This document shows positions 4,431 to 57,845 of a DNA stretch of 64,000 bases, piece by piece. Numbering within the stretch: the first letter of the stretch is position 1; each line of letters opens with the position of its first letter. The position numbers and the translations under genes are program-made. Below the pieces are notes generated by a model. That model was given only the letters and a program-made list of their open reading frames with translations, did no database searches and was not told the origin of the DNA. Source of the stretch: Octopus bimaculoides (Eukaryota); the NCBI RefSeq assembly GCF_001194135.2, contig NC_068981.1, positions 115,681,528-115,745,527 of the forward strand, written 5' to 3'.

Positions 4431-4494
4431 NNNNNNNNNNNNNNNNNNNNNNNNNNNNNNNNNNNNNNNNNNNNNNNNNNNNNNNNNNNNNNNN

Positions 4495-4780: not shown

Positions 4781-5359
4781 CGTCAGAATAATAGTAGACT
4801 TACTTGTAAAATAGGACGTGTGCGTTCAATAATGTAATAATACAATGTAATAATGTAATAATACATATATATATATATACATACATACATGCATGCATGT
4901 ATGTATATGAGTATATATATATGAATATACAATAACACAGATGGTTGAGGTTCACTACAACTGTTTCAGACATGATCTTTATTGATGAATTTCTCACCAA
5001 ATACAAAGTAGTGCAAAATGATCCTACCAACCAGGTTACAGCTGAGAGACTCTCTCAGCCATAACCTACGATAGTTGTAAGTAATCATCACCATTTTACA
5101 AGCAATGTCATTTATTTTCAATTTTTGGTGAAAGCATATCTGGTTATGAGGAAATATTTTGCTTCAAAATTGATGAGGTCTAGAAAAAGGAAAAGCAGTT
5201 GACCGTAGCAAATGCATTTCATCTGTCCCCTACAAGCATGCAAAGTTGACTGGTTATGGTATATGCAGGACAAACAAGATAAAAACAAAACAATTAACCT
5301 CACTTTTTGTCAGTTACAACAACAACAACAAAAATAATATTTGAAAATCATTATCTTAC

Positions 5360-5791
5360 TTTGAATTGCCTTTGTATCTTATCTCGATCATTTTCAAATG
5401 CAGCAGCTCTTGCAAGTGCTTGGCTTTCAGCTTGAGTTGCCAAATCTCGTTCACCTCGTAGTTTGGCACAAGTTTTCTGAAGAGCCAACAACTCTGCTCG
5501 AAATTTCTTGTTCTCATTTATTAGCTTTTGTTCTTTCTTCTGCATGTTAGCGATCTCCTGTTCTTTATTTCGCCGATACATCTCAAATTCTTTGTTTTTG
5601 CGTTCAAGTTCCTGGCTGTCTAAGTCGATTGAACGCAAGCTTTCATCTTTGGGTTTTCGAAGTCCTAGACGTCCCCTTGGTTTCATTTCAATCGGGATCC
5701 TTTTAATGACACCATGGCTATTGCCATCACAGTCGGCGCCAATGATATCATCATCATCAGGCGAATGTAAGAAAGAACTGCCAGTTCCCAT
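5360..5791 (-). CDS. NPHP3: Nephrocystin-3 homologue, coding exon 1 (N-myristoylation motif plus coiled coil)
   Basis: ATG at 5791 gives MGTGSS...EFEMYRRNKEQEIANMQKKEQKLINENKKFRAELLALQKTCAKLRGERDLATQAESQALARAAAFENDRDKIQRQFK. This matches the NPHP3 N-terminus as I recall it (MGTASS...ENKRLRAELQALQKT...FEHDRDKVKRQFK). Phase-0 donor GTAAGA at 5359. Confidence 0.93.
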
Positions 5792-8157
5792 GTTGAATAT
5801 ATTTAGTTCCGTAATTTTGAGTATAGGTGGGGGCCAATATGTTACAATAAGAGCCTTTAAGATATATTCACTTTTATATCTAATATTTGGTGGGAAGCTA
5901 ATATCAACTCCTGGAACAAAAAAAAACAACATTTTTTTTACCTTCTATTATTTTGCTTTTCAGGTTAGCATAGCCAAAGTAGCTATGCAAATTCAGACAT
6001 TAATTAAACAGCTAAAATTTGATGCTTTTCATACCATTCATGATCTGGCAGGTGTATTTATTGTTGAGTTGTATTGACTAAAACAAACATGCGGCTCATT
6101 CAAAATTTGTCTACTTTAGTGAGTTTATGATAGAGTTAAAAAAGGGGTGCTTCTATCTTGGTCCAGGCACATGGTAGTTCTCAAACATGTGGAAGTTCTA
6201 CTTCGTTCCTGCTGCCATCAGCAGTGTACTGTAGCTATTTAACCCTTTAGCATTTAAACTGATATTCAAAGCAGTGAGATCAAGCCTCTTACACCTACAC
6301 TACGTTATTCTAAACATAAGCTGTCGTATCATCAAAATCTCAAAGTTACAAGATAATGTATGACTAATTCAAAATGATGTGAATAAATAAGGATTGCATC
6401 TGAATGCTAAAGGGATAATGTACCTATTTACAGCCAGATAGACGTGGGAGGGGGCTTTGCCATATTCATAATGCAACACTATTTGCGGAATATAAACATT
6501 GGTCTACCCACTGGTAATCAGATGCCATTTTGAGTTAGCCTACTGTGAGGTTTGAAGAATATAGTGTTCTTCACTCAATCATAAACAACAGAATGGTTGT
6601 TGCAAAGTTAGAACTGCAGCATTAATAAATGGATTGATTAAAACAGTGGTCTTGTTCTAAAGATGGCTGCTCTTTTGAACATTAAGTAAATAAAAGTGGC
6701 ATGGACATATATCTAATTTACATCTGAAACAGGGAGAAAGAAAGAGAGTAAGGTATCTTACCTATAGCAGCACAGAAAGGTTAATCCATGCAAGACATAT
6801 TTTAGTCAATTTGGGGATGATTTACTTCATTATATATACCTCAATTTACCTAACTACAAGAAATATGCACCAAGCCATCTAGAAATATTACTTTTGATAG
6901 CGTAGAGTTGATAACATGTGTGTGTGTGTTGTGTGTGTTGTGTGAGGAGCGTCTATGTTTTGTGTGTGTGGATGTGTGCACATGTGTGTGTGAGTGTGTG
7001 TGATAGTGGAGATTTATCTGTCATTTTAGAGAATGAATTAGTGAGAGAAACTATTCAAGGTTGCTGCTTGTTTGAAGAACAATAGTTACAATATTCAAAG
7101 CAGTGATCATTAAAATAAAATTAATTCAGAATAATTTGTGCAGCAATGAAATGGCAATATTGGTCCAATGATTAATATTATTATAATTATTCCAGGAAGC
7201 ATGGGAGACAACCTCACTCATGTTTTGATCTAATCTGACTCTGCAGCTAAGCACAAGCTTTCACTGCACTTGCTGAAGTAGTGATGTAAGAATTAGGAAC
7301 TAAATGTACAATGTTGTACATTAGTAGGTTTGAAATTGACATATTTTAGATAATATTTAACTAAGAGACACCAGAAATATGAAAAACAATGGTCAATTTG
7401 TGTTACATAGCATTAGAAGGTTAATTAGACATACTTAACGTATTGCGCATTAAAAGGCTAATTAGACAGTGACAAAAATACAATACCAGGCAATGAGTAT
7501 AATTATCCTAATTAGGGTAATTGACTGTCCTTTCCTCACTGCATAATTATTCTTAATTAATCTTTTAATCATTGCATTAAATATGATAACACTACCTTGA
7601 CACTATCGTTGAATTAAAACTAGGAACTGATTGTTGAAACCACTGGACACATATTTTATTGTAAAGGAGCACATGACTTTTATTTATAATGTATGGATGC
7701 AACAGACGTTATTTATAATACTGTAGTAAATGAGTGAATCTGAGAATAAAAATGAAACTTTGTTAAGAAGAGCTAATGACTTTACAGCCTAATGAAGGAT
7801 ATTTTGGCAAATTATTTCTTCTCTAATAAAATTGTGGCTTTGTGTTAATCTAAAGAATCCATATTTGGATCCAAAAACTCTAGAGAAATCACTAAGTCAA
7901 TAAAGATTGTGAGCTCAGATTTACTGCAGCTCTTCATTGTGACAGAATACCAACTTATATATCTATGTGACATAAATACATGTCAGATCAGGTGAGAGTG
8001 TTAGCTGCAAGAAAATACTGTTCTATCCAAGTGATGTTTGATACATACGTTTCTCATTATGGAACAGGAACCAGGCAGTCTCACTAAGAAGTTAGCAGCT
8101 GAATTTCTTTAACCAATATGCCACCATGTTTTTCTCAATTAATCCAAGGCAATAAGG

Positions 8158-14347: not shown

Positions 14348-15480
14348 TGTAGTGAAACTACCTACCGCCATTAGATACAAAACTGCTATGGCCATTCTTC
14401 TCATTTAAATATAAATAAATGCGAGCGTAGCAGAGAACCCATTCCTTGTCATCACGTGACTGATTATTATTCGAATCGGCAATTTCTTCGAACCTTTCCC
14501 GCCAGAACGCAAACTGACCAATCACAGCCCCTAATAAGGTCACGTGATAGAGTAAAATTCTATCACCGTCTTGGAGCCCTCTTAACGCTATATATAGATC
14601 AACTCATACCCCACAATTTGTCTCGGTCCAGTTTCCCTTTGAGAACTGTTCCGTGTACCACACGACAGCAGCAGCAGTTCCAGCGACCACTTCAACAGCT
14701 TCGTCCAGCCAACGATGACCTCCGCCGTCGCCACATCAGCAACAAGAGTCTACTACTACTATCCAGCATCATCGTCATGACCAACACGATTTCTACTNNN
14801 NNNNNNNNNNNNNNNNNNNNNNNNNNNNNNNNNNNNNNNNNNNNNNNNNNNNNNNNNNNNNNNNNNNNNNNNNNNNNNNNNNNNNNNNNNNNNNNNNNNN
14901 NNNNNNNNNNNNNNNNNNNNNNNNNNNNNNNNNNNNNNNNNNNNNNNNNNNNNNNNNNNNNNNNNNNNNNNNNNNNNNNNNNNNNNNNNNNNNNNNNNNN
15001 NNNNNNNNNNNNNNNNNNNNNNGCCACGACATCACAACTAGTGATCAGCTCTGCCACACTCAGCCAACTCACTTTCACATACAGAACTTTTCCTATAGTG
15101 TACTAAAGATCTGGTATAATTGCTCACGTGTTATTGACTCTTTCTATTTGCTGTAAACACTCATACACACATGTATCACTCACATACACACTTTTCTTTG
15201 TATGACGGCCTGTCTTTGATTATGTTCTTATACGTCGCATTCACACTCTCACACAGACATACATCTTTAACGCCATAATAAATATCTCTGTTATTCATCT
15301 TATACGGTTGTGGTCTTTCATTACTGGTCATCTATGTTATCGTCGTATAACATGACGTATATCATATCTGATATATATTATTTTGTGTTCGACCGTGTGA
15401 CGCGTTTAAATAAAAGGAGTCCTCTGTTTTTCCATTCGTCACCATTTCTCCTTTTTGAGTTCGCACGGTCGTCCCTTACA
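14348..15480 (+). mobile_element. Probable solo LTR (contains a gap)
   Basis: TGT...ACA ends, 4-bp TSD GGTA (14344-14347 and 15481-15484), CCAAT at 14518, TATATATA at 14589, AATAAA at 15409. Confidence 0.62.
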
Positions 15481-23189: not shown

Positions 23190-24735
23190 GGATCTAGTTC
23201 AAAACGGGGGCACCAGTATTTTCTTAACGAAACACTTTGAAACTTGGGACACTGGTAGAATGTGTCATATAAAACATCTTTTTCTCTTAGTCTTCTTAAG
23301 AAAAAATATTATATTGCAATTTATTTCATGTTAAAGTTGTCGTATTTCTGTAATTTCAACCAATGACTGACGTCCATTCAGCCGAATACATTAAGTGCTG
23401 ACTACGTAAACAAACGATTCTCAAACGATTCTGGCGGTGATAAAATTATTATTTCCTTGTCAAAAAATGGCTGAAGCATATTGGCAGTAGCTAATAAACC
23501 TTTCTATTATAGANNNNNNNNNNNNNNNNNNNNNNNNNNNNNNNNNNNNNNNNNNNNNNNNNNNNNNNNNNNNNNNNNNNNNNNNNNNNNNNNNNNNNNN
23601 NNNNNNNNNNNNNNNNNNNNNNNNNNNNNNNNNNNNNNNNNNNNNNNNNNNNNNNNNNNNNNNNNNNNNNNNNNNNNNNNNNNNNNNNNNNNNNNNNNNN
23701 NNNNNNNNNNNNNNNNNNNNNNNNNNNNNNNNNNNNNNNNNNNNNNNNNNNNNNNNNNNNNNNNNNNNNNNNNNNNNNNNNNNNNNNNNNNNNNNNNNNN
23801 NNNNNNNNNNNNNNNNNNNNNNNNNNNNNNNNNNNNNNNNNNNNNNNNNNNNNNNNNNNNNNNNNNNNNNNNNNNNNNNNNNNNNNNNNNNNNNNNNNNN
23901 NNNNNNNNNNNNNNNNNNNNCGAATCACGTCGGGGGTCACCAGTATATAAAAAAGTGGGTTATTGCAGATCAGCGGGCTGCGTGTTCGAATCACGTCGGG
24001 GGTCACCAGTATAGGAAAGTTGGTTATACACCATTAGATGTATACCTGACTTTCCTATATAAAATTAAAGAATTAAACGGAACGCTGAACTCCAGACTAT
24101 CAACCTAAACAACATTTTATTCAGGTGGTAAATATATACATCTTTAGCTCTTGTTTGTTGTTACAGCTTCTGTGTGTGTGAGCATAGTTGTTGGGACGTT
24201 GTTATGTAGATGTAAGCGAGCTGTCGAGCGTAAGTTCGAAAGATGAAGAGAGACAGCTAAACACGTAAAGAGACTGTCTCCAGAGTTGGAATGTTGGAGA
24301 CACTGCTTGACACGTCCATGCTCATGGCCGGCCGACCAAGAAAGAGAATGAATTGAGCGGGAACGCTTGGTTATTGAATTGCACGCATGCATGAGACTAC
24401 GCATGCGCACAGCATTACTACAAGGGTTAGGGTTAGGGAAAACGAACACACGCGTGTTGCCTCTCTGCAAAATGTCAGAAGTAATGGAGATTAAATACGC
24501 TTTACACCGCTTAAACTGCCAAAGGAGTAAGTATAAACAGCTGAATACTTGTCAGTGATTGGTTGAAATTATCGAAATAAGACAATTTTTTACATGAAAT
24601 TAATTCGAATACAAAATTTTTTTTCTGTTCTATAACACAAAATAGATAAGTATACGAAGTCTGAAAGTCTTTCGGTACCAAAAACACAACATAAAACATA
24701 AATGAAAACTGGTGCCCCCGTTTTGAACAAGATCC
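23190..24735. mobile_element. GGATC-TIR element (copy 3, contains a gap) inserted into a tRNA-derived SINE
   Basis: TIR GGATCT.GTTCAAAACGGGGGCACCAGT. TSD GTTCAATC (23182-23189 and 24736-24743). GGGTTAGGGTTAGGG at about 24423. Confidence 0.92.
23921..24008 (+). repeat. 66-bp tandem repeat of tRNA-Trp 3' half + CCA + 23-nt spacer (at least 2 units, runs into a gap)
   Basis: CAGATCAGCGGGCTGCGTGTTCGAATCACGTCGGGGGTCACCA at 23966-24008. Same 3' part at 23921-23942, period 66 bp. Confidence 0.85.
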
Positions 24736-25457: not shown

Positions 25458-25954
25458 ACTGTCGTTCACGCAGTGCCGACCCTGGTGTGCTGGTGAAAGG
25501 TTGTGTTTCTTTTTGACTCCACGTGTGTTGTGCTTAAAAACTTGTTTATATTCTTGAATGTGATAAAGTGTAGAATTAGATTATGATCCTGCTTCCAGCT
25601 ACAGTGTTGCTGCCAGCATTTNNNNNNNNNNNNNNNNNNNNNNNNNNNNNNNNNNNNNNNNNNNNNNNNNNNNNNNNNNNNNNNNNNNNNNNNNNNNNNN
25701 NNNNNNNNNNNNNNNNNNNNNNNNNNNNNNNNNNNNNNNNNNNNNNNTCAGTGAACAAATTAAACACAATACCCGGCAGTGGCTAAAACGCGAACCGGTC
25801 AAGTTTATGCATAAATTTTCTTTTTATATGCTTGTTTCCTTTTACATAATATTAAAACAACGGCTGAAAAATTTCTGAAGCAGTACTAATTTTATCTAGG
25901 AGCCGTCACTGACTGGGATAGACCAATAATTGAAATGGCTAATATTCTTTTCTA

Positions 25955-29566: not shown

Positions 29567-30117
29567 CTATTCATGAAGTGAAATATCAGAGGTCTTGGTT
29601 GGTGTGTTTGCCAATGTCATGAAGCCGTTAAATAATTCGTTTGTTTCATTACTGCGCAATGTATCCAGATGAGTGTTTAAAGGGTAATCAGCAGGTAATG
29701 GCTCATCAACTCTAGATCTATAGAAAGATGACTGGCTTGCATCTGACATCTGCACGATTTCTGTGGAGTTAGATTTTGGTGCTTCATTATTTGAGCAATG
29801 ATAATACATGGGGATATTTGAATGCTCAAATTCATTGTCATTGAAATTATATTTTCCAGCTACAAAATTACCATCCGTTTGCCCGATTTCCGAATTGCCA
29901 AAATAGCTAGATGGGTATGCACAGAGGTTTGGGTAGTTGACGTACTGTCTTGGTGGACAAAATAATTGTGTTTGTGGTCCAACTGGTGCAATCTGTTTAT
30001 GAACAAAGCACTCGTTTGCTTGGTATAAAGGTATTGAATATGGACACATATGTATAGGTAGTTCCTGCTTTATGTAATTTTTCTTGTTTGCATTGTCATT
30101 AACCACAGGAATTAATC
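29567..30117 (-). CDS. SOHLH2: SOHLH-like terminal exon 10 (P/Q/Y/N-rich C-terminus)
   Basis: Polypyrimidine-AAAG acceptor in phase 1, contains the 179-aa ORF, stop at 29567-29569. The spliced CDS totals 2016 nt, i.e. 671 aa plus stop. Confidence 0.8.
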
Positions 30118-30428: not shown

Positions 30429-32714
30429 TGTCGTTGTTTTTTAGTAGAAAGTGTGTACGCTATATGCGAGTCCTGTTATTGTTAACGTTATTTCTTGGAT
30501 TGTTGAATCATTGTTATTACTTGAATTTGTTAGAATCTTTATTTGTTTTCCCCATTTATGGGCGAAGTTGTGTAGAACATTATTATGGAGAATAGACAAG
30601 TGCAAAATGGCAGTTATGCTGCGGTGACTGGAAAAAGCCTGTCAGTGGAGCTACTGCAGGTCCGTGAAATAGAAGTCAAAGACAAGGACTTCAAGAAATA
30701 CACCACCTTGTTGAGAAAGGAGGGAGACCGTCTCAGACTGACGCCTCCCAAGGAAGTTATTGAGAATACAGAAAAGAGAACTATCATCTATAGAACGCTA
30801 AACATGGCGTCGAAGAAAGTAGAGATAGCAGCCGTTGAAGTGGTAGAGGAAATGCTTGAAAGAGGTGAAAGAATCGACTACATTCTACACCAGAGGACGG
30901 GAGTTCAGCACGGTGGAAGTGCGCTTCGAAAATGAAGCAAAGTAGTACTCCACTGTAGCCTTGAAATCAGCGGAGCGGGCACTACCTACTTACTGTGGCA
31001 AACGTGTGGCTAGAGTAAGGATAGGTAGAGTGACCCCTGAAATTGACGAGGTATGGCTGGTGGCAGTCATCCTCTGTCATACAGAGGAAGAAGCAAAAGT
31101 TTTTAAAATGTCAAAGACTACAAAGGTGAACTGATGGGGATATGGGCTAAAAGTAATAGGATCTTTTTTAAAACGGGGGCCACATTTTTCATTAATGTCT
31201 TACGTAGTGTTTTTGGTACCGAAAGACTTTCAAACTTCGTATACTTATCTATTTTGTGTTATAGAACAGAAAAATATTTTTGTATTCGAATTCATTTCAT
31301 CTAAAAAATTGTCTTATTTCGATAATTTCAACCAATCACTGACAAGTATTCAGTTGTTTACATTTACTCCTTGGCTGATTAAGCGATGTAAAGCGTATTT
31401 AATCTCCATACCTTCGTTTTATTTGCTTTTTTCATTTTAAATTTGCTTTAACCCTAACCCTAGGGTTAGAGTTAGGGTTAGGGTTAGGGTTAATTGTTTC
31501 AGAATCGTTTGTTTATGTAGTCGGCACGTAATGTATATCGGCTGAATGGACGTCAGTGATTGGTTGAAATTACAGAAATACGACAACTTTAACATGGAAT
31601 AATTTATGGATTTCTTGTTTTTTTAAGAAGACTAAGAGAAAAAGATGTTTTATATGACACATTCTACCAGTGTTCCAAGTTTCAAAGTGTTTCGTTAATG
31701 AAAAATGTGGCCCCCGTTTTAAAAAAGATCCAAGTAATAGTCCATATAAGCCTGGCAGACCTCCATAAGAATGTGGAAGAGCTGGTGTTGCCAGATGAGA
31801 CTAGATTAAGGATTGTTGTGGAGGGTAGACCTCCAATATGTTTTGCGTGTGGAGTAAGGGTACACATGAAGGCTAAGTCACCCCAGAAACACGAGGAGGA
31901 AATAATAGAAACAGAAATTCAAGAAGAGAGTACAGCTGTAGCAGAGGATAAAATGGACAAGCAATCTACGGTGGTGAAAAGAAAAAAGAATTTAGAATCA
32001 CCACCTAAAAGCTCCAAGGAAAAAAAAAAAAAAGAAGAAAACAAACGAGGAACAAGAAAGAAAAGAAAAATGGAAAATCAAATGAAAAATCAAGTGAAAT
32101 GTGAACTCAGGAACCGTTGTCTTCAACCAGTAAGGAAAAAGGAGCATGGCAGGAGAATGAAAACGAAAGAGACAGCGAATTTGAGACAGAGAAAATTGTG
32201 TCGGGCGAAGAGAGTGGTGAAAGATATCAGAGAAAGAGATGCCTACAGGGAGAAATTTACGAAACCGCGTAGTATACGAAAAATGTGTTGAAATCGAAAA
32301 GATGGTAACAAAGATGATAAATGTTATCAGAGTAAAATTGGCAAACCATGAAGGTAAGAAGGGCGTGCTATTGGAGAGAGATTAATAGAACAGTTTGGGG
32401 GAAAAAAAAAAGAGTTGAAATATCACCACTTCAGTTTAGATACGACGAGTTGCCGCCTGTTGTAATTTTCGACTATATAGTACAATATTCGTCGCAATTT
32501 TGTGTTAAAAAAAATACGTGACTAAAGTGAACTGTAATTTAAAAGAACAATAAAATGAAACTGCTTGCTTTGGGGGGCGAGTAAGCCATTTCATCCTCAT
32601 TTTTTTTGTCATAGTCCATTCGAAATGTGTTTTATATGTACCCCAATGTCTTGTTTTGTCTGTCCTTATGGTGTCCACTCTTTATAAAGGCCATGTGCCT
32701 AAATAAAAGAAATT
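30429..32714 (+). mobile_element. ORF1-only L1/Tx1-type retroelement, copy 1 (degenerate, MITE-interrupted)
   Basis: Gag-like ORF with VVEGRPPICFACGVRVHMKAK knuckle, 3' tail ...AAATAAAAGAAATT, and 17-bp TSD GAGC(T/A)GGCAGAATCGTT (30412-30428 and 32715-32731). Confidence 0.8.
31159..31731. mobile_element. GGATC-TIR MITE (copy 4, 573 bp) interrupting a retroelement ORF1
   Basis: Same TIR as copy 2. TSD AAGTAATA (31151-31158 and 31732-31739). Removing it restores GYGLKVIVHISLADL. Confidence 0.95.
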
Positions 32715-32758
32715 GAGCAGGCAGAATCGTTAGCACGCCGGGCGAACTGCTTAGCGGT

Positions 32759-34412
32759 CTCTGTGAAGTTGATGCATGAGTTTGTGTTGAACTGTTTATT
32801 GAATTGCTGCCAAAGATGTTGGTTGTTGTTTGTTTCCCATTGTGGAAGATGGGGAACCGGGGTTGTGCGGCCGCGGCGAGCAAAGGAGTGGACACGCGAG
32901 AGTTAGAGGTTCGCGAGAGTTAGAGGTTCGCGAGATGGGGGTGGAGCCTAAAAAGATGAAGGAGAGTGAGAAATTAATCACAATGGAAGGAAACATTTTT
33001 AAGCTGACACCGCCTGAAGAGCTATCGGCCAACGTGACAGAAAAAGAACGGTTATATTTAAAACCATGAAGGCAGCCACGAGAAAGATAGAAATAGCACC
33101 AATAGAGGCCATAGAAGAATGTGTTAAGAATATAAAAAGATTCACAACATACATTACGAGAAGGAGAAGATACGTCACTCTGGAGGTGCTCTTCACAACG
33201 GAGGAGGAAGTAATAAAGCACTCCACAGAGGCAGTAAGGACAGAGGAATGGATACTCTTGCTTTTGTACTGTGGCAAATGTGTGGCCAAGGTGCGAGTGG
33301 GTAAAGTACCACCCGAATTGAAAGAAGAATGGCTGATGACAGCCATAACGTATAATATGATTGACGGGAAGATTCTGAAGGCTACAAGAACTCAGAAGGT
33401 GAACTACTGGGAATATGGTATCGAATTAACGATTCAGGCAACGACGGAGGACTTGAATAGTGTAGTAGATGAGATTGTGCTGTTTGAAGATGTGAGAATG
33501 AGAGTTACTGTGGAGGGTAGACCACCATGTGGAAAAAGGGGCCACATGAAGGCATGTTGCACCCAAAGAAAGCCACAAACAGAACAGGAGGAGAGACATG
33601 AGAGTGTGGACCAGGTAGTACAGGACATGGCAACAGAAAAAGAAACGGAGAATTGGATTCACTATGGTTAAAAAGAAAAGAAGGTGGAGCGGAGGAATGA
33701 GTTCTTCGCCAGAGAAGCAGAAAAAGAAGAGAGAAGAGGCGAGAAAAAAAAACTGTGAAGGAGGGCAGTAGGAAGGAAAAAGAAAGTGGAGTTACCAGTA
33801 GAGAAAGAGTCGGAAACCCAACTGTATGAAAGTGAGATGGAGAGACTATTTATGAAGGAAGAAAAGAGAGAACCAAAAGTCCAAGAGAAAAAGAAAGAAG
33901 ATACGAGGAGGAGACAGAGTGTGGTATTATGTGACGTACCCAAAAAATGTTAAAACAGAGAAAAAGATAATCAAGCTTCATTCAATAGTAAGAGTGAAGG
34001 TGCCTTCATACGTCTACGCGGAGGATATGAAGGCAATATTGATTGAAGAGGAAAACTACAGAAAATCGAAAAAGATGTGTGGAGATAGCATTGACCCACC
34101 AGGAGTGGAGGTGCAATTTAAAGAGTTACCACCAGTGGTAAATTTAAGAGATATCGATCCACTAATGAAGTTCTACTAAAGACAAAAAAAAAGTATGAAA
34201 TTAAAGAAAAAAAAGAGCAATTGTAGATAATACATATAACGGTTCAAATGGTAATGTATGGAAGTGGGGCCCATGCGTCCATTTTCATTATTTCATTTTT
34301 ATATAATTTTCATCTCATTTACATTCGTTTTATGTTTTTGTCCCCACTGTAGTCTTGTCTGTCCTTATGGTGTCCCCATCTATGTTTAGGGCTTTATGCC
34401 TAATAAAGAAAT
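32759..34412 (+). mobile_element. ORF1-only L1/Tx1-type retroelement, copy 2 (frameshifted)
   Basis: ORF pieces 32830-34179 homologous to copies 1 and 3. Shares the 3' motif TTGTCTGTCCTTATGGTGTCC...AATAAAGAAAT. No endonuclease or RT coding sequence. Confidence 0.8.
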
Positions 34413-34423
34413 CGGTATCCCGT

Positions 34424-35450
34424 CTCTGTGAAGTCATTGCGTGAGTTTATGCTGAAATATTTATCGAATCATTGCCATTGTTATTTGATTTGAATTGCTG
34501 TTAGAACTATTGCCGTTGTTAATTTGTTAATTGTTGTCCCCCCCCCCCATTGTGGGAAAATGGAGAAGAAGCAGGAGGGAGGCCCAAGTTATACGGCCGC
34601 AACGAACAGAGGAGTAGATGTGCAAGAGTTGGAGGTGCGCGAGATAAAGGTGGAGCCTAGAAGGATGAAGGAGAGTGAAAAATTAATCACTAAGGAAGGT
34701 AATATTTTGAAGCTAACGCCACCTGAAGAATTATCGGTCAACGTGTTAAAAAGAACGGTAACATTTAAAACCATGAAGACAGCCACAAGAAAAATAGAGA
34801 TTGCACCGATAGGAACCGTAGAGGAGTGTAGCAAGTAGTTGAAAAGATTTACAGCATGCATTACGAGAGGGAGAAAATACGTCACTGTGGAGATGCGCTT
34901 CACATTAGAGGAGGAAGCAATAAAGCACTCCACAAAGGCTGTAAGGTCAGAAGAATGGATGCTCCTGCCTTCGTACTGCGGCAAACGTGTGGCCAAAGTG
35001 CGAGTAGGTAGGGTGTCACCCGAGTTAAAGGAAGAATGGCTGATGACAGCAGTAACATACAATATGAAGGATGGGAAGATTTTGAAGGCTACTAGGACCC
35101 AGAAGGTAAACTACTGGGGATATGGTATTGAATTGACAATACAGGCAACTACGGAGGATTTAAACAGTGTGGTGGATGAGATTGTGTTGCCAGAAGATGT
35201 AAGATTGAGAGTTAGTGTAGAGGGAAGGCCGCTGATATGTTTCACATGTGGAGAGAGGGGCCACATGAAGGCGTGGTGCACCCAACGAGTACAACAAGCA
35301 GAACAGGTGGAGAGACAGGAGAGTGTGGACCAGACATTGGTAACAGAAAAAGAAACAGAGAATGGATTCACTATGGTTAAAAAGAAAAGGAGGAGGAGCG
35401 GAGGAATGTGTTCTCTGCCAGAGAAGCAGAAAATCTTTCCTGGGTACCCT
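34424..35450 (+). mobile_element. ORF1-only L1/Tx1-type retroelement, copy 3 (3'-truncated)
   Basis: Intact CCHC knuckle CFTCGERGHMKAWC. In-frame TAG at about 34836. 5' start CTCTGTGAAG shared with copy 2. Confidence 0.8.
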
Positions 35451-36164
35451 GTATCTATCATCGTTCAGGAACCGACCAAATAAGTACTAGATGAGCATTA
35501 AAGTTGATAAAGCTGACTGTATCGTGTCATTACATGTCTTCGCCACGTGCTAACTAATAATTTATGTCAATAAATCATTGAAATACTTACGGATTTCTGA
35601 ATTTAAAATGCTACTTTGTATAGGTTTCGAATTTGTTGAGACAGTGGTGGTCATTCGACTGGGAATAGAATTATCTTTGAAGTTTTTCTTATATTCAAGA
35701 ATTGTTATTTCATCACTCTCTGCAGTTCCAGTCATTTCCAATCGAGGTTCTTTATGGACAGCATATTGTAGATGTGTATCTGAAAGTGTTTGGCACGTTA
35801 TCTTATATAGCATACTATAAATAGGATTCGAAGAAACAAATAGAAATTAATGCGTTTGATTAACAAGAGAAGTTTTACTAGAAGATCGCTCAGAACAAAG
35901 ATAATTTCAGTTTATTACTGGTATTTTATTTTTACCTATGACAAAGTAACTCCGACAGGATTGGCATGTAAATTCCTAATGATTATGTAGTCTTGTTCAA
36001 TGCTGTTTTGGGCATTAGAACCTCTGGTTTGACTTTAATGAGCATAAAACCTATATATCAGATGAAAGGAGGTTGGAGGTATACTGTTAATACCTATATT
36101 AGGAAATTGGCTGTGCTTTGGAAATTCTTTTCAGCGTGTCTCATTACGGAAAAGTGATTTATCA

Positions 36165-37205: not shown

Positions 37206-37342
37206 CATTTGTCTCCAGGTACTTAGCACTTGTAGTTCCATCCATTTTGGAATTAGGTCTCTTGACCGGTGACGTTGCAACATTTGCAGCACTGTTATTG
37301 GACACACTTTTCACATTGAGCCGTTGTACTTGTCCTTCATGG
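37206..37342 (-). CDS. SOHLH2: SOHLH-like exon 9
   Basis: TTGTCTAG acceptor and GTGAGA donor, phase 2 to 1, open frame. Confidence 0.78.
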
Positions 37343-38205: not shown

Positions 38206-38375
38206 CAAAATTCGGAGACTGGAGTTAGTTTATTGGACGTGTAATCTTGATCTTTATTCGTTTTGATAACTTTTTGCACCGGAGCCGTTGTTTTTCTGGA
38301 GGATGCTATATTCGGTTGATTACTTTTCATTGTATTCTCTTTCATTATGTAGTCTTTACTGAGAATATTTGTAAT
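38206..38375 (-). CDS. SOHLH2: SOHLH-like exon 8
   Basis: TTGCAG acceptor in phase 0, open for 170 nt, GTATTT donor in phase 2. Confidence 0.78.
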
Positions 38376-39964: not shown

Positions 39965-40112
39965 CTGAGACTGTAATTCTTGTGGTAAGATAGTGTTGAC
40001 TATTTTTATGTAATTAACACCTAATTCTAGAATGGACGCCATGTCAGTTTTCCTGCCTCTGACGTATGGTAGTAGTACTCTTAATTGACCACAGCTTTCT
40101 TTAATGCGTTCT
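39965..40112 (-). CDS. SOHLH2: SOHLH-like exon 7, helix-loop-helix (ERIKESCGQLRVLLPYVRGRKTDMASILELGVNYIK)
   Basis: Close match to the SOHLH2 bHLH as recalled (ERIKYCCEQLRTLLPYVKGRKNDAASVLEATVDYVK). TTTGCAG acceptor and GTAAAA donor, phase 2 to 0. Confidence 0.93.
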
Positions 40113-40709
40113 CTGCAAATGAATGAATAAATATATAAATACGTTAATAATATCCAAAGCGATAAATTAACGGTTTAGTACTGTATACAAATCTAAGACG
40201 GTACTGCTCTAATACATGGATATCAAATTCTTAGATCGAATGCCAAAATAGAACTTTTAGTTGTTTGGCAACGACTCATTTACCAACTTGCTACAACTAA
40301 GTCACATATAATCACCTCCATCTGTATTAATAGTAGCTTCTAAAACAGCTTCTGAGCTGGTAACATGTCCATCACATATAGGTATGTCCACCTGACTCAC
40401 TTCCATCTTCTCCACTTGTCATCAACAGTGGGTCCCACTACTCAAGGTCCACACTGACTGCTTCGCATAAACCTTCATATGAAGCAAATCATCCTTCTAG
40501 AAACTATTTGCCAATACCCCCCCCCCNNNNNNNNNNNNNNNNNNNNNNNNNNNNNNNNNNNNNNNNNNNNNNNNCGCCACAAGGAGATTGAAACTGAACA
40601 CATTTCAGGCTAAATATCAGCCTGAGAAGACTTGCAAAGGTCAGAGTTTCTCTCCTCCACATCTTCCTTTTCAATAATACAAAAATAGTCTCAATATCGT
40701 ATGCGTGTG

Positions 40710-40741
<32 letters not shown>

Positions 40742-41691
40742 GAGACATGGACATTTGTGCGCATGAATACACAGAAGCACATCATTGACATGCATACACA
40801 AACACACACAATCGTACACAAATATACATATGGACATACATACACATACACCCGCACACACATATGGACACAAAACGGACTCGCCCACGCACATGCTGAC
40901 ATACACACACACACACATTTTCCACTCCTCGCTTGCCCGGCACAGAAACATACACGGATTTACATACATGTTGACGTATTGATTCGAGAGATATATGTCC
41001 ACCACACATTATTTAACAAATAACTGTTATAGTCTGGGTGCCAGCTGGAAGATTTCTACATGATGAGGTACAGTTCAGTGGGGGAAGCACATCATATATA
41101 ATGGAGATGTTTAGATGTATTTATGAGGTGCACTTTGACCTACGAAGAAGGCAACGTGAAAAGAGTCATTCTGGAGCATCATTATATGATGTGAAAAGAA
41201 AACTTTCAGTGGTGTTCAAAATTACAAATTATTATATATCGTCCAGATTGTTAATGTTTAATCCAGTGATAGAGAGGTCGTCTCCAAGCAATATATGGGA
41301 AATATTGTTCAGGAAATTAGTTTGAGGTCAAATTTCACAGTTCATTTCGTTGATGATTAATTTTTGTGGTGAAATGGATAAGGGGGAATCTTATTCTAGA
41401 TATGATGCCAAGTAAATTCTCTAATAAGAAAAACTGGACTTAGCACACTAAACTAATGATTCACTCATTAAATTTACTATGTACAATTAAGATGTCCCTT
41501 AATATATGTTTAAATCAAAGAATACAGTTAAGGGATTGCATTCAACGTCGACGTTGTGCAATGCTTACAATAAAATATGAACTACCAGCTGGCTGACTGT
41601 CTGGTAATGTATTAACTCAACTATCAGTATTCACTCTTAACGAGTAATAGTCAAGGATATTACATACAACTGAAGACAATGTTCTACGTAC

Positions 41692-41847
41692 CGACGTAAC
41701 TTTTCCTTGGCTGTGTGATCATGTCCGTTAGAAATGTTTGGAGATTTCAACTGACCAGTGATTGTTGTTATATTTGTTTGTCCTAGCCTGGTAGCATATT
41801 GGTCGAATTCACGGATATGAGGCGGAATTCCTTCATCGCAATCAACA
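41692..41847 (-). CDS. SOHLH2: SOHLH-like exon 6, ending in the basic region HTAKEKLRR
   Basis: Long polypyrimidine tract plus TTTCAG acceptor, GTACGT donor, phase 2 to 2. Human SOHLH2 basic region is HSSKEKLRR. Confidence 0.88.
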
Positions 41848-43731: not shown

Positions 43732-43804
43732 TCTGCTAGATTGGTAGAATCCTCTGAGCAAGAATTAGTATCACTTGAGCAAGTCTCTGTAGTCACTTGT
43801 TCCG
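43732..43804 (-). CDS. SOHLH2: SOHLH-like exon 5
   Basis: TTCCTTAAAG acceptor and GTAAGT donor, phase 1 to 2. Confidence 0.8.
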
Positions 43805-44249: not shown

Positions 44250-44354
44250 CTTCATTCAGTTGAACAGATGTCAATTTGCTGTATTTATTTTGGACAATGG
44301 ACTTCGTGACTGGTTGAACAACGGTTTCATCAATACCATGGAGTTTAAGATCAA
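44250..44354 (-). CDS. SOHLH2: SOHLH-like exon 4 (DLKLHGIDETVVQPVTKSIVQNKYSKLTSVQLNE)
   Basis: Poly-T-CAG acceptor and GTTAGT donor, phase 1 to 1. Resembles human SOHLH2 HGMDIALTEPLT. Confidence 0.85.
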
Positions 44355-45383
44355 CTGAAAAAAAAAAAAAAATGAAATAATGAAATTAACAATTATTAAT
44401 AAAATAAAACGAACATAATTTCCTCAGTTCCTATTTTTTACGGAAATTGTTTTCTTTTGATTTGCTTATGTATCAAATAAAGAGATTTATATAAAATCTT
44501 TTTCTTTGCACAATCATACTTTATATATTGTTATCATTCAATTACATCTGATAGAGACGGTCAAAAATTCAAACAAAAAAGCCAAAAGTTCTTGTGAAGG
44601 TACCTGACTTTTATTCAACCGATAACGATTCGGATTAATTTAAAGAACTGAGCAAAACCAGTGGGTCAAACTTTATTGTTGAATCATCATTTTGACTCTC
44701 ACAGATAAACAATTGAGAAAGCTGCGATGAACATCAATTTTGGTGGAACTTTTTAAGTGTCTGAATAAGAAATCTGAAGTTATGCAATATCATATTTCAC
44801 GAAAAATGATATCAGAAGGACGTTTGTATCAGTGACATGAATCAATTAATTTGCAGAATCAATCATATAATTCATGATTTTGACGACAAGGAGTGTTGGG
44901 ATTTACTCCAGTTTTCACCACTTTAAGTGACTGAGTCATTTTACTTTTCAGGTCATTTATCGCAAATTTTATTAATGAGAGAATATAAGTTAACACAAAA
45001 GCCTACAGAAAGATAAGGAAACTCCAGCATTTGTAGTAGCTTTTCGGTAAATATTACATATATTCCGAGTTCAAATCATGCTGAGGATTGTCGTTGCTTA
45101 TCTTATGAAGTCAATGAAAATAAGTACCTTACTTGTACTGGTATCGATTATTCTAAACAATCAGATTTCCTTAACCTATTACACCAATACCAGAACTCAT
45201 TTGTACATTTTTCGATTGGTGGCGTATGTTTAAAACAAGATGGATTGGGCTATTTGAGAGTTAAGCCAGTAAGCATGAGGGATGAATACTTAAAGCGTTT
45301 TTACCAAGGAACTGGTACAGAGATGACGGCTCATGTAATTCAATAATTATAAATATAATAAATAAGCTTTAGAAAAAACTTAC

Positions 45384-45445
45384 CATCAATTTTAGTTGGA
45401 GAGACTCCGATAACGATAGTATTTTTGTTATATTTACTGACATAT
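45384..45445 (-). CDS. SOHLH2: SOHLH-like exon 3 (YVSKYNKNTIVIGVSPTKID)
   Basis: TTGTTTAG acceptor and GTAAGT donor, phase 2 to 1, joins both neighbours in frame. Confidence 0.85.
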
Positions 45446-46003
45446 CTAAACAACAAGAGAGATTTTCTATATCAAAACGAAATTAAAAACAAAGGACAAA
45501 ATACAACTGTTTTCAAGCAAAAATAGCACACTTTTATCTTATAACTTTCTTATATTCCTTTCCTATCCAACAGTGCGCTACGAACAGTTGATAACTAAAC
45601 TTTCAAGATGTGATTGTAGCAAAGAATGCACTAAAACTTTTAAATATTTTTGAGAAAGATCTGCAAGATAATTATGCACTAGAAATTAAACAAGTTCCTA
45701 AGTATTTTCTTGAAAAATTGATGAATTCTACCAAGAGAATCGACTGAATACATTAAGGGATAACATACTTAAGTATGTAAGTGGTTTGATTGATAATGAT
45801 TAGCTATAGTAGAAATTTTGTGTTTAGATAATCCCCCCAAAAAATTTTAGCGAAGCAATAGTGGGTATTATAAGGAAAATGCCCAAATTAAAAAATAATG
45901 CTGTAAGTCTCGTAACTAATGTTATCATTTTATAATGTTTTGGTGAATTGCCTATAAGAACCGAGTCTAACTCCATGTCGTAGTGATTTTCATTCAGCCA
46001 GTC

Positions 46004-46065
46004 TATGATTAATATACCACGAGATTTAAGTTTGTAAACTTAAATCTCGTGGTATATTAATCATA
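46004..46065. other. Perfect 30-bp inverted repeat with a 2-nt loop (intron of the SOHLH-like gene)
   Basis: TATGATTAATATACCACGAGATTTAAGTTT-GT-AAACTTAAATCTCGTGGTATATTAATCATA. Confidence 0.97.
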
Positions 46066-46334
46066 TTTTTGTATCAGGTTGAGAAGTAAGTGCTATATCC
46101 TCAAGACACTAAGTTGCATGAAGTGAATTATATGTTCTTCCTTACAAGCTTCTACTTTGTAAACGAGAGGAGTGTTTTTACAATGCTTTGATGAAAGACA
46201 CCGCCACGTGCTATACAGAGCAATCAATAATGAACGACTAAACCAAACCACTTATCAACATTACAGAAAAACTATGCACAAATAAAGCAAAATAGACATA
46301 ATTTATAAAAAATATTTTAGTGAAAACGACTTAC

Positions 46335-46831
46335 CTAATGGAAGTTGTAAGACTAAGTAACTCTTGATTGACTAGTGGGTTTACTAGAAGCCATATCAAG
46401 CTATAGGCTTGCCTGTTGCACATCTCATACGCACTTTCATCATCCATACACACTTGCACTTGATGACCAATAGTGAGCCGGGCTATTATTTCAGTTAGTT
46501 CTGTACACCATTTCAAGTTGCCTATCACTAAAGAGACACCGGCTGAGCACAACGGAGTTGATTGTGGTGATGGTGAGGCAGTTGGAATTGGTGGGCAATC
46601 TGAGGTTGTTCGTTGAGTAGCTGCAAGTGGTGAGCTTGGAGAAAGTGACTGAGCTGAAAGTGGTGATTGTGAAGTTGAATTATTAAGGCAATTGGGATAC
46701 TTATCTTTGGATGGCCCTGAATCACACAATACTTCTGTGCTTGTTGGAATCAAATCTGACGAAGAATCATCTGAAGTTTCAGGACTTGAACAATTGGTAC
46801 AAGTAAGATTTTTTTCATTGCCATCGTTGAC
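46335..46831 (-). CDS. SOHLH2: SOHLH-like exon 2: Ser/Pro-rich linker plus first half of the receiver-like domain
   Basis: TTGTTTAG acceptor, 497 nt open, GTAAGT donor in phase 2. Confidence 0.85.
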
Positions 46832-50774: not shown

Positions 50775-52252
50775 NNNNNNNNNNNNNNNNNNNNNNNNNN
50801 NNNNNNNNNNNNNNNNNNNNNNNNNNNNNNNNNNNNNNNNNNNNNNNNNNNNNNNNNNNNNNNNNNNNNNNNNNNNNNNNNNNNNNNNNNNNNNNNNNNN
50901 NNNNNNNNNNNNNNNNNNNNNNNNNNNNNNNNNNNNNNNNNNNNNNNNNNNNNNNNNNNNNNNNNNNNNNNNNNNNNNNNNNNNNNNNNNNNNNNNNNNN
51001 NNNNNNNNNNNNNNNNNNNNNNNNNNNNNNNNNNNNNNNNNNNNNNNNNNNNNNNNNNNNNNNNNNNNNNNNNNNNNNNNNNNNNNNNNNNNNNNNNNNN
51101 NNNNNNNNNNNNNNNNNNNNNNNNNNNNNNNNNNNNNNNNNNNNNNNNNNNNNNNNNNNNNNNNNNNNNNNNNNNNNNNNNNNNNNNNNNNNNNNNNNNN
51201 NNNNNNNNNNNNNNNNNNNNNNNNNNNNNNNNNNNNNNNNNNNNNNNNNNNNNNNNNNNNNNNNNNNNNNNNNNNNNNNNNNNNNTTTTACTCTAATAGA
51301 AACGGAATTACTGATTTAATAACACTCCAAAAATTATGACGCTAATCGAAGTATATTATACTTAAATTATTTTGTGCCAAAATAACGTTCACATGTACAA
51401 ATTCTACGTGTTGACCCAAGCTGTTTGAAAAAGGTGTGTCTTCAGAAAGACAAGACACTTTGGATATTGTAGCCTTGACCCATAAAGCGCTGGGATTTGT
51501 ACTTACATAGCATGGACTGCTGAGCACATTTTATGAAAATGAAACTACTGTGCACACATTAAAAAAAAAAAGATAGCTAGAATATCTTCTTAGTATATAA
51601 TGGTGACAAGTTTTACATCATCTGAAGTCATTAGTTGAATTATTAGTCCTCTTGCATTCTGGCGGGTATCGGAGCATTTGAGTGACATTAGACCTCAACA
51701 AATGCTCATAAAGTAAATGCATCTATCTGGGCCTCGATCGTGGCCTGTCAACCTGTGCCTGACGGCCTCGATGGTGGCCCGTCACGCTTTATGTGTTAAG
51801 TACCAACTGGAGTGGGCATGGGTGGAATGCTTTTGATCATAGGTTTGTTCAATCAGGTTTGGGGTCTTATCTGTTGCTGTCACAATTTTTGAAATTTGAA
51901 ATATTGGCGCAATTTTTCACGTTGAATCTGATTCTGTTATACATTTATTTTAGAAAAACGTTAAAGAATTAAAGTTTGATAAATTTTACTCTATCAAAAA
52001 AGAGAATTCGGAAGCTGGTATTTTCTACGTGATAGCTGCCTATTACAAAATGAAATCAGAAACATTACAACGATGAATCGTTATTTAATAAAATAAAAGC
52101 AAAACATTACAACGACAAAAGTCGTAAGACATGTTGAAGTTTTAAGTTTTAATGACTGAAATAATGTGAAACGATCGAACAGATATGTAAATAATTTCAA
52201 AAGGAAAAAACGAAATTTTGTGAAAAATTACAAAAAAATGTACGTTAGTGTT

Positions 52253-53638: not shown

Positions 53639-53755
53639 CCATTCGGCACAATTTTTTTTCATTAAGGTCGTTACATAGTTAAGAGCAAAAGACATAACAC
53701 CTACCACCTGATCGAAACCAATTTCAAACTCGTCTGTAATATCATCAATATCCAT
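53639..53755 (-). CDS. SOHLH2: SOHLH-like gene, putative first coding exon (MDIDDITDEFEIGFDQVVGVMSFALNYVTTLMKKNCAEW)
   Basis: ATG, 39 open codons, phase-0 donor GTTAGT matching the phase-0 acceptor at 46831. A TATATAA motif lies about 60 nt upstream. No homology support, so tentative. Confidence 0.55.
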
Positions 53756-57339: not shown

Positions 57340-57845
57340 ACCGCCGCCATCCCTTTCAGGGATAGCCACCGTCAAGACCAGGTCTTGATTATTGCAGCCA
57401 CCCTGCTCGAAACCTCCGTCCAGTTCTTCTCTATATGGAGGCCTGGTTCAAACCAGACTCCCAGCAATTTAACCAGTCCCTCCGTCCAGCACTCAACAAT
57501 GCTGTCTGAAGGCATTGACTTGCCAACCCAGGTGCTGAACTGCAAGCTGACCGACTTTTCCCGGTTGATCTTTGCTCCTGCCACCGTCTCGTAAACCTCA
57601 ATAGCCTTACCCACTTCACGTAGGCGTGCTACTGTGGTAACGCTGATAGTGATATCGTCCGCGTAAGACCAAACAAACTCTTCTAAACCTGGTTCTCTCT
57701 AGATGTCACTCAACTTTAGCAGTAGGGGGTCAAGAACCACCGCATACAAAAGTGGTGAGAGCAGACATCCTTGACGAACCGAGCGTCTGATGCAGAACGG
57801 CTTCGGAAGGAAACCGTTCTCCCGAACTATCGAGTCAATGTGATA
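57340..57845 (-). mobile_element. L1/Tx1-clade reverse transcriptase fragment (degenerate)
   Basis: SVRQGCLLSPLLY...YADDITI...YETVAGAKINREKS...KLLGVWF motifs, with stops. Confidence 0.88.

Follow-up and report, generated by a model that had tools for sequence, protein, structure and literature searches.

A putative aspartate-less receiver domain upstream of the basic helix-loop-helix in octopus SOHLH2

Introduction

What is the conserved segment that precedes the bHLH (basic helix-loop-helix) domain in the germ-cell transcription factor SOHLH2 (spermatogenesis- and oogenesis-specific bHLH protein 2)? The question is raised by a 64,000-nucleotide stretch of the Octopus bimaculoides genome (contig NC_068981.1, positions 115,681,528 to 115,745,527; hereafter, the window), an AT-rich animal sequence (31-41% G+C) whose minus strand carries a SOHLH2 gene. 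SOHLH2 is annotated with a bHLH only, and the rest of the protein is treated as featureless in the papers that we found. A first-pass annotation, made from the DNA letters alone, had proposed that a peptide encoded upstream of the bHLH is a pseudo-receiver, i.e., a relative of CheY that has lost its phosphoacceptor aspartate.

Here we argue, with a probability of roughly three in four, that SOHLH2 contains an aspartate-less receiver which would act as a phosphorylation-independent module for partner binding or dimerisation. Sequence profiles and structural models make it highly probable that residues 115-232 of the octopus protein are a degenerate, aspartate-less receiver (REC, CheY-like). Full-text searches of the literature for a link between SOHLH or SOHLH2 and a receiver domain, CheY, response regulator, flavodoxin or Rossmann fold found nothing relevant; the matches to 'receiver' for SOHLH were all to 'receiver operating characteristic'. 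Likewise, Pfam has no family for the domain, either in molluscs or in its precomputed annotation of the mammalian proteins. The fold may already have been assigned automatically in InterPro/Gene3D, ECOD or the AlphaFold DB clusters. Pseudo-receivers are well known, and what is new here is the receiver-bHLH architecture in animals.

Sequence similarity to receiver domains

The 124-amino-acid octopus domain was used as a single-sequence phmmer query against a library of 1.84e9 proteins, resulting in 22 matches. Of these, 20 were SOHLH2-type proteins, or fragments of such proteins, from molluscs (bivalves, gastropods, a chiton and an octopus). The other two were metagenomic proteins with genuine receivers, CheY-like by source label, namely a five-receiver hybrid kinase (P0018; E 3.8e-5, summed over its 5 receiver copies) and a kinase-receiver fragment (P0022; E 3.8e-4 on one domain).

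Profiles were built from an alignment of 14 mollusc SOHLH2 domains (A1) and compared with the PDB. All 11 matches of A1 at E <1 were receivers, the best being 3c97_A (E 7.7e-7, profile positions 4-115 of 129), so that the receiver family named in the first-pass annotation was indeed recovered by profile search. When seven mammalian N-termini were added, 3c97 was matched at E 9.4e-9 and receivers made up 26 of 27 matches; the receiver signal was therefore strengthened, not diluted, by the mammalian sequences. The aligned domains keep several receiver motifs, i.e., a proline that follows beta3, the beta4 motif IIGV[ST] and the beta5 motif G-x-D-[ED]-x(4)-P. Judged from the single-sequence and profile matches, the likeness to receivers is far above chance. 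In sequence, the domain is closest to receivers of hybrid histidine kinases, and it is, with high probability, homologous to the receivers of His-Asp phosphorelays.

Other searches were less informative. The sole single-sequence Pfam match, DUF4971, was far below cut-off (E 0.075) and was rejected, as were the single-sequence PDB matches (tubulin, at best E 0.39, and a single response regulator, E 0.92), which were not significant. A word index queried for homologues, first by the octopus domain alone and then by the alignment of mollusc domains, gave no matches; these proteins are apparently absent from that index. An hhalign comparison of the mollusc profile with a single Escherichia coli CheY sequence gave 1.3% probability (E 0.04), and this result was set aside because one sequence makes a weak template.

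Predicted structure

The octopus domain was modelled with AlphaFold2 from alignment A1 as a 128-amino-acid construct (adding 110 gives protein numbering). The model had a mean predicted local distance difference test (pLDDT) score of 90.1 and a predicted template modelling (pTM) score of 0.85, with the following elements in construct numbering:

5-9: beta1
12-25: alpha1
30-34: beta2
37-46: alpha2
51-55: beta3
62-73: alpha3
82-87: beta4
96-98: helical turn replacing alpha4
102-105: beta5
110-118: alpha5

The predicted fold is thus doubly wound about a parallel five-stranded sheet and flavodoxin-like of the receiver type (b1-a1-b2-a2-b3-a3-b4-(short a4)-b5-a5), as the first-pass annotation had anticipated. 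Its reading of five alternations of beta and alpha needs a small correction: the five strands are present, with only four full helices, since a 3-residue deletion relative to receivers has reduced helix 4 to a three-residue turn.

At an E cut-off of 0.001, Foldseek searches of the PDB with this model gave 170 matches. The best 50 of the 170 were all receivers of response regulators or hybrid kinases, with template modelling (TM) scores of 0.6-0.8 (maximum 0.80) and pairwise identities to the octopus domain of 12-20%. A mammalian SOHLH2 domain, modelled from the joint alignment, had a pLDDT of 80.3 and the same topology without helix 4, and its best 50 Foldseek matches were receivers or CheY-like domains only. 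Neither set of 50 contained a flavodoxin, a TIR domain or a member of any other fold family.

Residues at the active-site positions

Functional positions were read from HMMER alignments to 3c97, GacS D1 and Chaetomium HK3 and tabulated for 20 sequences, 13 from molluscs and seven from mammals. The phosphoacceptor aspartate at the end of beta3 is replaced by Leu165 in octopus (LIWLL), by L, M, K, Q, Y, V, H or R among the molluscs and by lysine in the mammals, so that none of the 20 sequences is acidic there (D or E); no orthologue in this sample retains the aspartate for which the first-pass annotation had suggested a survey. The lysine at the end of beta5 is also lost in 20/20, being Gln216 in octopus, Q, E, G, P or L among molluscs and glutamate in mammals. 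The proline that follows it (Pro217 in octopus) is invariant in all 20, and LHGIDE....P, which is strongly conserved, corresponds to aGaDdyl.KP of receivers.

The remaining positions are more varied. The acidic pair that binds Mg2+ at the end of beta1 is Asn121-Leu122 in octopus and Gly-Asp in mammals, and is partly or wholly kept in some molluscs (D-E in Lottia and Aplysia, E-E in Plakobranchus). At the Thr/Ser position that ends beta4, octopus has Ser197; eight of the 13 mollusc sequences have S or T here and the other five alanine, and in the mammals it is isoleucine in six of seven and threonine in one. Two octopus cysteines, Cys144 at the end of beta2 and Cys154 in the 'CN' of alpha2, are kept in most mollusc domains of A1 and not in mammals.

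The substitutions in the octopus peptide (leucine for the phosphoacceptor, Asn-Leu for the acidic pair and Gln-Pro for Lys-Pro) are those that had been read from it at first sight. Read through these alignments, the octopus domain is without every residue required for aspartate phosphorylation and metal binding. With its scaffold motifs retained and its chemistry lost, the domain is a true pseudo-receiver.

Conservation and age of the architecture

Comparison of the window with Octopus sinensis showed 94.9% identity in the domain and 94.5% in the bHLH, and 83.6-85.2% in three other regions of the protein. Since the domain is as conserved as the bHLH, selection on it has been as strong as on the DNA-binding domain.

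A similar N-terminal segment in human SOHLH2 had been noted in the first-pass annotation, and a human SOHLH2 N-terminus was used here as bait only. Mammalian SOHLH2 sequences were retrieved from the database, one of them 100% identical to the bait over their common part, and the conclusions rest on these retrieved sequences. Mammalian and mollusc domain profiles aligned with each other in hhalign at 88.6% probability (E 2.7e-6) over 111 columns with receiver landmarks in register. Together with the shared fold of the mammalian model, this bears out the similarity noted at first.

The order of N-terminal domain followed by bHLH was seen in independent annotations of at least 12 mollusc species and of mammals; bivalves, gastropods, a chiton and mammals all have the domain at an equivalent place in SOHLH2. 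Judging from this shared arrangement, the receiver-bHLH fusion is at least as old as the common ancestor of molluscs and mammals. The fusion had been described at the outset as an ancient property of SOHLH proteins in general; its antiquity holds to at least that ancestor, and the claim is limited here to SOHLH2-type proteins of molluscs and mammals, the groups that were sampled.

One chiton homologue has a different outline. In Liolophura sinensis XP_064616805.1 (P0009, 1246 amino acids) the SOHLH2 part is followed by C2H2 zinc fingers and a long transposon-like region, an architecture that is almost certainly a fused prediction and not real.

Structure of the gene

Exons were located by tblastn of the 706-amino-acid O. 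sinensis protein XP_036357740.1, itself found by an exhaustive HMMER search, against the window. The SOHLH2 gene is intact, with 11 exons on the minus strand (53755 down to 29567) encoding 711 amino acids in an uninterrupted frame, and all ten introns have AG/GT ends, with exon boundaries set by eye. All 8-mers of the peptide noted in the first-pass annotation were found on the minus strand, in blocks 46334-46537, 45385-45444 and 44284-44355. The peptide is encoded by the latter half of exon 2 together with the two exons that follow, so its assignment to exons 2-4 was correct, with exon 1 lying at 53755-53708. All features below are on the minus strand.

53708-53755: exon 1, start codon included, MDIDDITDEFEIGFDQ; located by tblastn with XP_036357740.1, with a GT donor
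46538-46831: exon 2, first part, Ser/Pro/Thr-rich low-complexity linker (amino acids 17-114); 85% identity to O. sinensis, below that of the domain
46335-46537: exon 2, second part, beta1-alpha1-beta2-alpha2-beta3-alpha3 of the receiver-like domain (amino acids 115-182), with Asn121-Leu122 at the acidic-pair positions
46385-46387: codon of Leu165, the phosphoacceptor position, within exon 2
45384-45445: exon 3, receiver-like domain from the end of alpha3 through beta4, RYVSKYNKNTIVIGVSPTKID; the Thr/Ser position is occupied by Ser197
44250-44354: exon 4, shortened alpha4, beta5 and alpha5, VDLKLHGIDETVVQPVTKSIVQNKYSKLTSVQLNE; HGIDE corresponds to receiver 'aGaDd' and Gln216-Pro217 to Lys-Pro
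43732-43804: exon 5, acidic/Ser-rich linker
41692-41847: exon 6, linker and basic region of the bHLH (DHTAKEKLRR)
39965-40112: exon 7, helices 1 and 2 of the bHLH with the loop between them, ERIKESCGQLRVLLPYVRGRKTDMASILELGVNYIKIV; supported by Pfam HLH and by identity to mammalian SOHLH2
38206-38375: exon 8
37206-37342: exon 9
35591-35779: exon 10
29567-30117: exon 11, C-terminal region and stop codon

The receiver-like domain lies approximately 75 residues upstream of the bHLH. The latter, encoded by exons 6 and 7, matches Pfam HLH when the spliced protein is scanned (E 4.3e-9), is 53% identical to primate SOHLH2 over 66 amino acids and carries the SOHLH-type pattern KEKLRRERIK...LLPY.[KR]GRK.D.AS.LE. 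Orthologues from O. vulgaris and Plakobranchus bear the depositor names SOHLH or SOHLH2. By sequence comparison, the gene in the window is the octopus SOHLH2 orthologue, orthologous to O. sinensis XP_036357740.1. Oyster Sohlh2 is likewise reported to have 11 exons, and to be gonad-specific in expression (PMC6529535).

The N-terminal extension of the octopus protein (46538-46831, amino acids 17-114) varies in length among molluscs, from none in some gene models to more than 300 amino acids in heterobranch gastropods (Aplysia, Biomphalaria, Plakobranchus), and in mammalian SOHLH2 the domain begins almost at the N-terminus. An assembly gap at 40527-40574 falls in intron 6, approximately 400 bases upstream of exon 7, and adjoins a long TG/CA-rich microsatellite region (~40600-41020).

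Comparison with known receivers

Mammalian SOHLH2 resembles the octopus protein in having an N-terminal alpha/beta domain of approximately 120 amino acids, a linker and a bHLH, in the loss of the phosphoacceptor and the lysine, and in an N-terminal domain that models as a receiver. The two differ at the aspartate position (lysine in mammals, leucine in octopus) and in length, the octopus protein being longer (711 amino acids) with its low-complexity extension, and the mammalian domain is more diverged and by sequence alone reaches no receivers.

The best matches in both sequence and structure were receivers of hybrid kinases and phosphorelays, i.e., Aspergillus oryzae 3c97, yeast and Candida Sln1, Chaetomium HK3 and HK6, Arabidopsis AHK5 and ETR1, and Pseudomonas GacS D1. 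These have in common with the SOHLH2 domain the (beta-alpha)5 order, hydrophobic beta1 and beta3, the beta3 proline, the beta4 motif IIxxT/S and, at beta5, G-x-D-x(5)-P. However, they possess the acidic pair, the phosphoacceptor aspartate and the lysine and are phosphorylated, whereas the octopus domain is without these residues; the SOHLH2 domain also has the deletion in helix 4 and is joined to a bHLH instead of a kinase.

Among eukaryotes, the plant pseudo-response regulators (TOC1/PRR) have the aspartate replaced and use the domain for protein interactions. Together with the type-B response regulators, they resemble SOHLH2 as eukaryotic regulators in which a receiver or pseudo-receiver is followed by a DNA-binding or CCT domain. 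However, their outputs are CCT or Myb/GARP domains, as opposed to the bHLH of SOHLH2, and plants keep a working phosphorelay. The searches made here showed no specific sequence affinity of the SOHLH2 domain to plant PRR or type-B regulators. In animals, the REC domain of the phosphodiesterase PDE8 is a receiver-like domain with no known cognate histidine kinase; it is joined to PAS and phosphodiesterase domains, in contrast to the transcription factor setting of SOHLH2.

Aspartate-less receivers such as HP1043, ChxR, FrzS, RitR, KaiA and CikA have been reviewed (PMC4395418). They carry out no phosphotransfer and usually act via dimerisation or partner binding (PMC4395418). Like the SOHLH2 domain they combine the receiver fold with the absence of a phosphorylatable aspartate, and the HP1043 structures 2pln and 2hqo were among the Foldseek matches of the octopus domain. 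They differ in that they are bacterial proteins whose fused outputs are winged-helix or other prokaryotic domains, and in some of them a cysteine serves as a redox switch. A Pfam-based survey of aspartate-less receivers in 2015 contained no confirmed animal example, and its few animal Pfam matches were regarded as possible contamination (PMC4395418). The receiver-bHLH architecture would join a short list of animal receiver-like domains, and the SOHLH2 domain offers a test case for the survival of any piece of two-component signalling in Metazoa.

Function and alternative explanations

With the active-site residues gone, neither aspartate phosphorylation nor Mg2+ binding by the domain would be possible, and it would therefore be a phosphorylation-independent module, most probably a surface for protein-protein interaction or dimerisation. 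Conservation is seen in alpha3 (LSLTTSIRY), in beta4, in the segment from beta4 to beta5 and in alpha5 (IRQKYSKW), all of them elements that receivers use for output and dimerisation. This is why we judge such a role the likeliest, and the contact face would probably be the side formed by alpha3, beta4-beta5 and alpha5. The domain could thereby set the pairing or recruitment of bHLH partners, e.g., of SOHLH2 with SOHLH1, which are reported to heterodimerise (PMC4086951). This mechanism is put forward tentatively, at somewhat less than an even chance.

Several observations weigh against this account. Pfam Response_reg (PF00072) failed to match any mollusc domain in the set of 14 even with the E limit at 1, or the octopus domain with the limit raised to 10; the failure of this model on mollusc sequences is probably the reason that the domain has gone unannotated. 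Single-sequence searches of Pfam and the PDB with the octopus domain gave nothing significant. A comparison of A1 with four real receivers in hhalign did favour the receiver assignment, at 97.5% probability and E 8e-12 over 111 columns, but this E value is optimistic because those receivers were selected for already matching the query. The mammal-only profile was not significant against the PDB or against the four real receivers, and therefore the assignment in mammals depends on the link to molluscs and on the model. Both structures, octopus and mammalian, are predictions from shallow alignments. Lastly, the partner-binding mechanism is drawn by analogy, both with aspartate-less receivers (PMC4395418) and with pseudo-response regulators of plants.

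The least improbable alternative, although unlikely, takes up the ligand option of the first-pass annotation: the pseudo-receiver would be a sensor of small molecules or redox state, akin to the quinone-binding KaiA and CikA or the cysteine-switched RitR. Aspartate-less receivers with ligand or redox inputs are documented (PMC4395418), and the two cysteines of beta2 and alpha2 are conserved in most mollusc domains. However, neither is conserved in mammalian SOHLH2, and the variable residues (L/M/K/Q/Y/V/H/R) at the aspartate position of the former active-site pocket speak against a conserved binding pocket there.

We consider it improbable that the domain is still a switchable receiver, phosphorylated by animal kinases at Ser197 or another Ser/Thr/Tyr. 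Atypical bacterial receivers with Ser/Thr phosphorylation are known (PMC4395418) and the beta4 Ser/Thr is retained in 8/13 mollusc sequences, yet this position is alanine in 5/13 molluscs and isoleucine in 6/7 mammals, helix 4, which would transmit the switch, is truncated, and there is no conserved kinase motif.

Marginally less probable again is a generic flavodoxin-like or Rossmann-like fold that has come to resemble receivers by convergence instead of homology. The failure of Response_reg to detect the domain and the pairwise identity to receivers of only 12-20% would fit such an origin. In contrast, the profile matches were receivers (11/11 and 26/27) at E values down to 9.4e-9, with full-length alignments in register; landmarks are shared down to single motifs (the beta3 proline, IIGV[ST] in beta4 and, at beta5, G-x-D-[ED]-x(4)-P); and the 50 best Foldseek matches included no flavodoxin, TIR or other fold family.

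That the segment is foreign to the SOHLH gene, through an artefact of gene model or assembly or a neighbouring gene fused by prediction, is very improbable, for although an assembly gap (40527-40574) lies inside the locus and the 1246-amino-acid Liolophura model is clearly over-extended, the gap is intronic, all splice sites are canonical, the frame is continuous and the same order of domain and bHLH is annotated independently in at least 12 mollusc species and in mammals. Bacterial contamination of the assembly or horizontal transfer into it was rejected, as the domain is interrupted by two introns and conserved in molluscs and mammals.

If the domain is an aspartate-less receiver, its origin may be sought in the phosphorelays of early eukaryotes. 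With the mollusc and mammal profile, nine of the 11 best PDB matches were fungal, yeast or plant phosphorelay receivers, even though bacterial receivers dominate the PDB, and this enrichment hints at descent from an ancestral eukaryotic phosphorelay. The SOHLH2 receiver could be a vertically inherited relic of that His-Asp system, a receiver of hybrid-kinase type that was joined to the bHLH before the protostome-deuterostome split and persisted, as a regulatory module independent of phosphorylation, after animals had lost their histidine kinases. We regard this history as possible, though doubtful; if true, SOHLH2 would represent, in animals, the counterpart of response-regulator transcription factors.

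For work on SOHLH2 itself, a folded domain that is conserved like the bHLH provides a concrete hypothesis for the difference between SOHLH2 and SOHLH1, and a defined unit for deletion, interaction and variant-interpretation studies.

Other features of the window

Three related open reading frames of approximately 200 amino acids lie in the same orientation within intron 10 of the SOHLH2 gene (31593-35483):

31593-32288, plus strand: first open reading frame
33018-33668, plus strand: second open reading frame
34839-35480, plus strand: third open reading frame

Each ends in a zinc knuckle (VEGRP..C..CG..GH....C), the third copy matching Pfam zf-CCHC at E 6e-4, just under cut-off, and GC skew across the region is strongly positive. 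The group looks like a tandemly repeated gag-like fragment of a retroelement. Upstream of the SOHLH2 gene, an open frame at 57375-57698 (minus strand) contains FVWSYADDITISV, which is reverse-transcriptase-like with a YADD motif, and is probably a fragment of a long interspersed nuclear element (LINE).

A large open exon at 5354-5944 (minus strand) starts with MGTGSSFLH and continues as a long charged coiled coil with ELERKNKEFEMYRRNKEQEIANMQKKEQKL. Its only Pfam match was a sub-threshold bZIP_1 (E 0.006), and a neighbouring gene probably has its first coding exon here. In mammals, a coiled-coil gene adjoins SOHLH2. The window contains six assembly gaps (runs of N), at 4431-4494, 14798-15022, 23514-23920, 25622-25747, 40527-40574 and 50775-51285.

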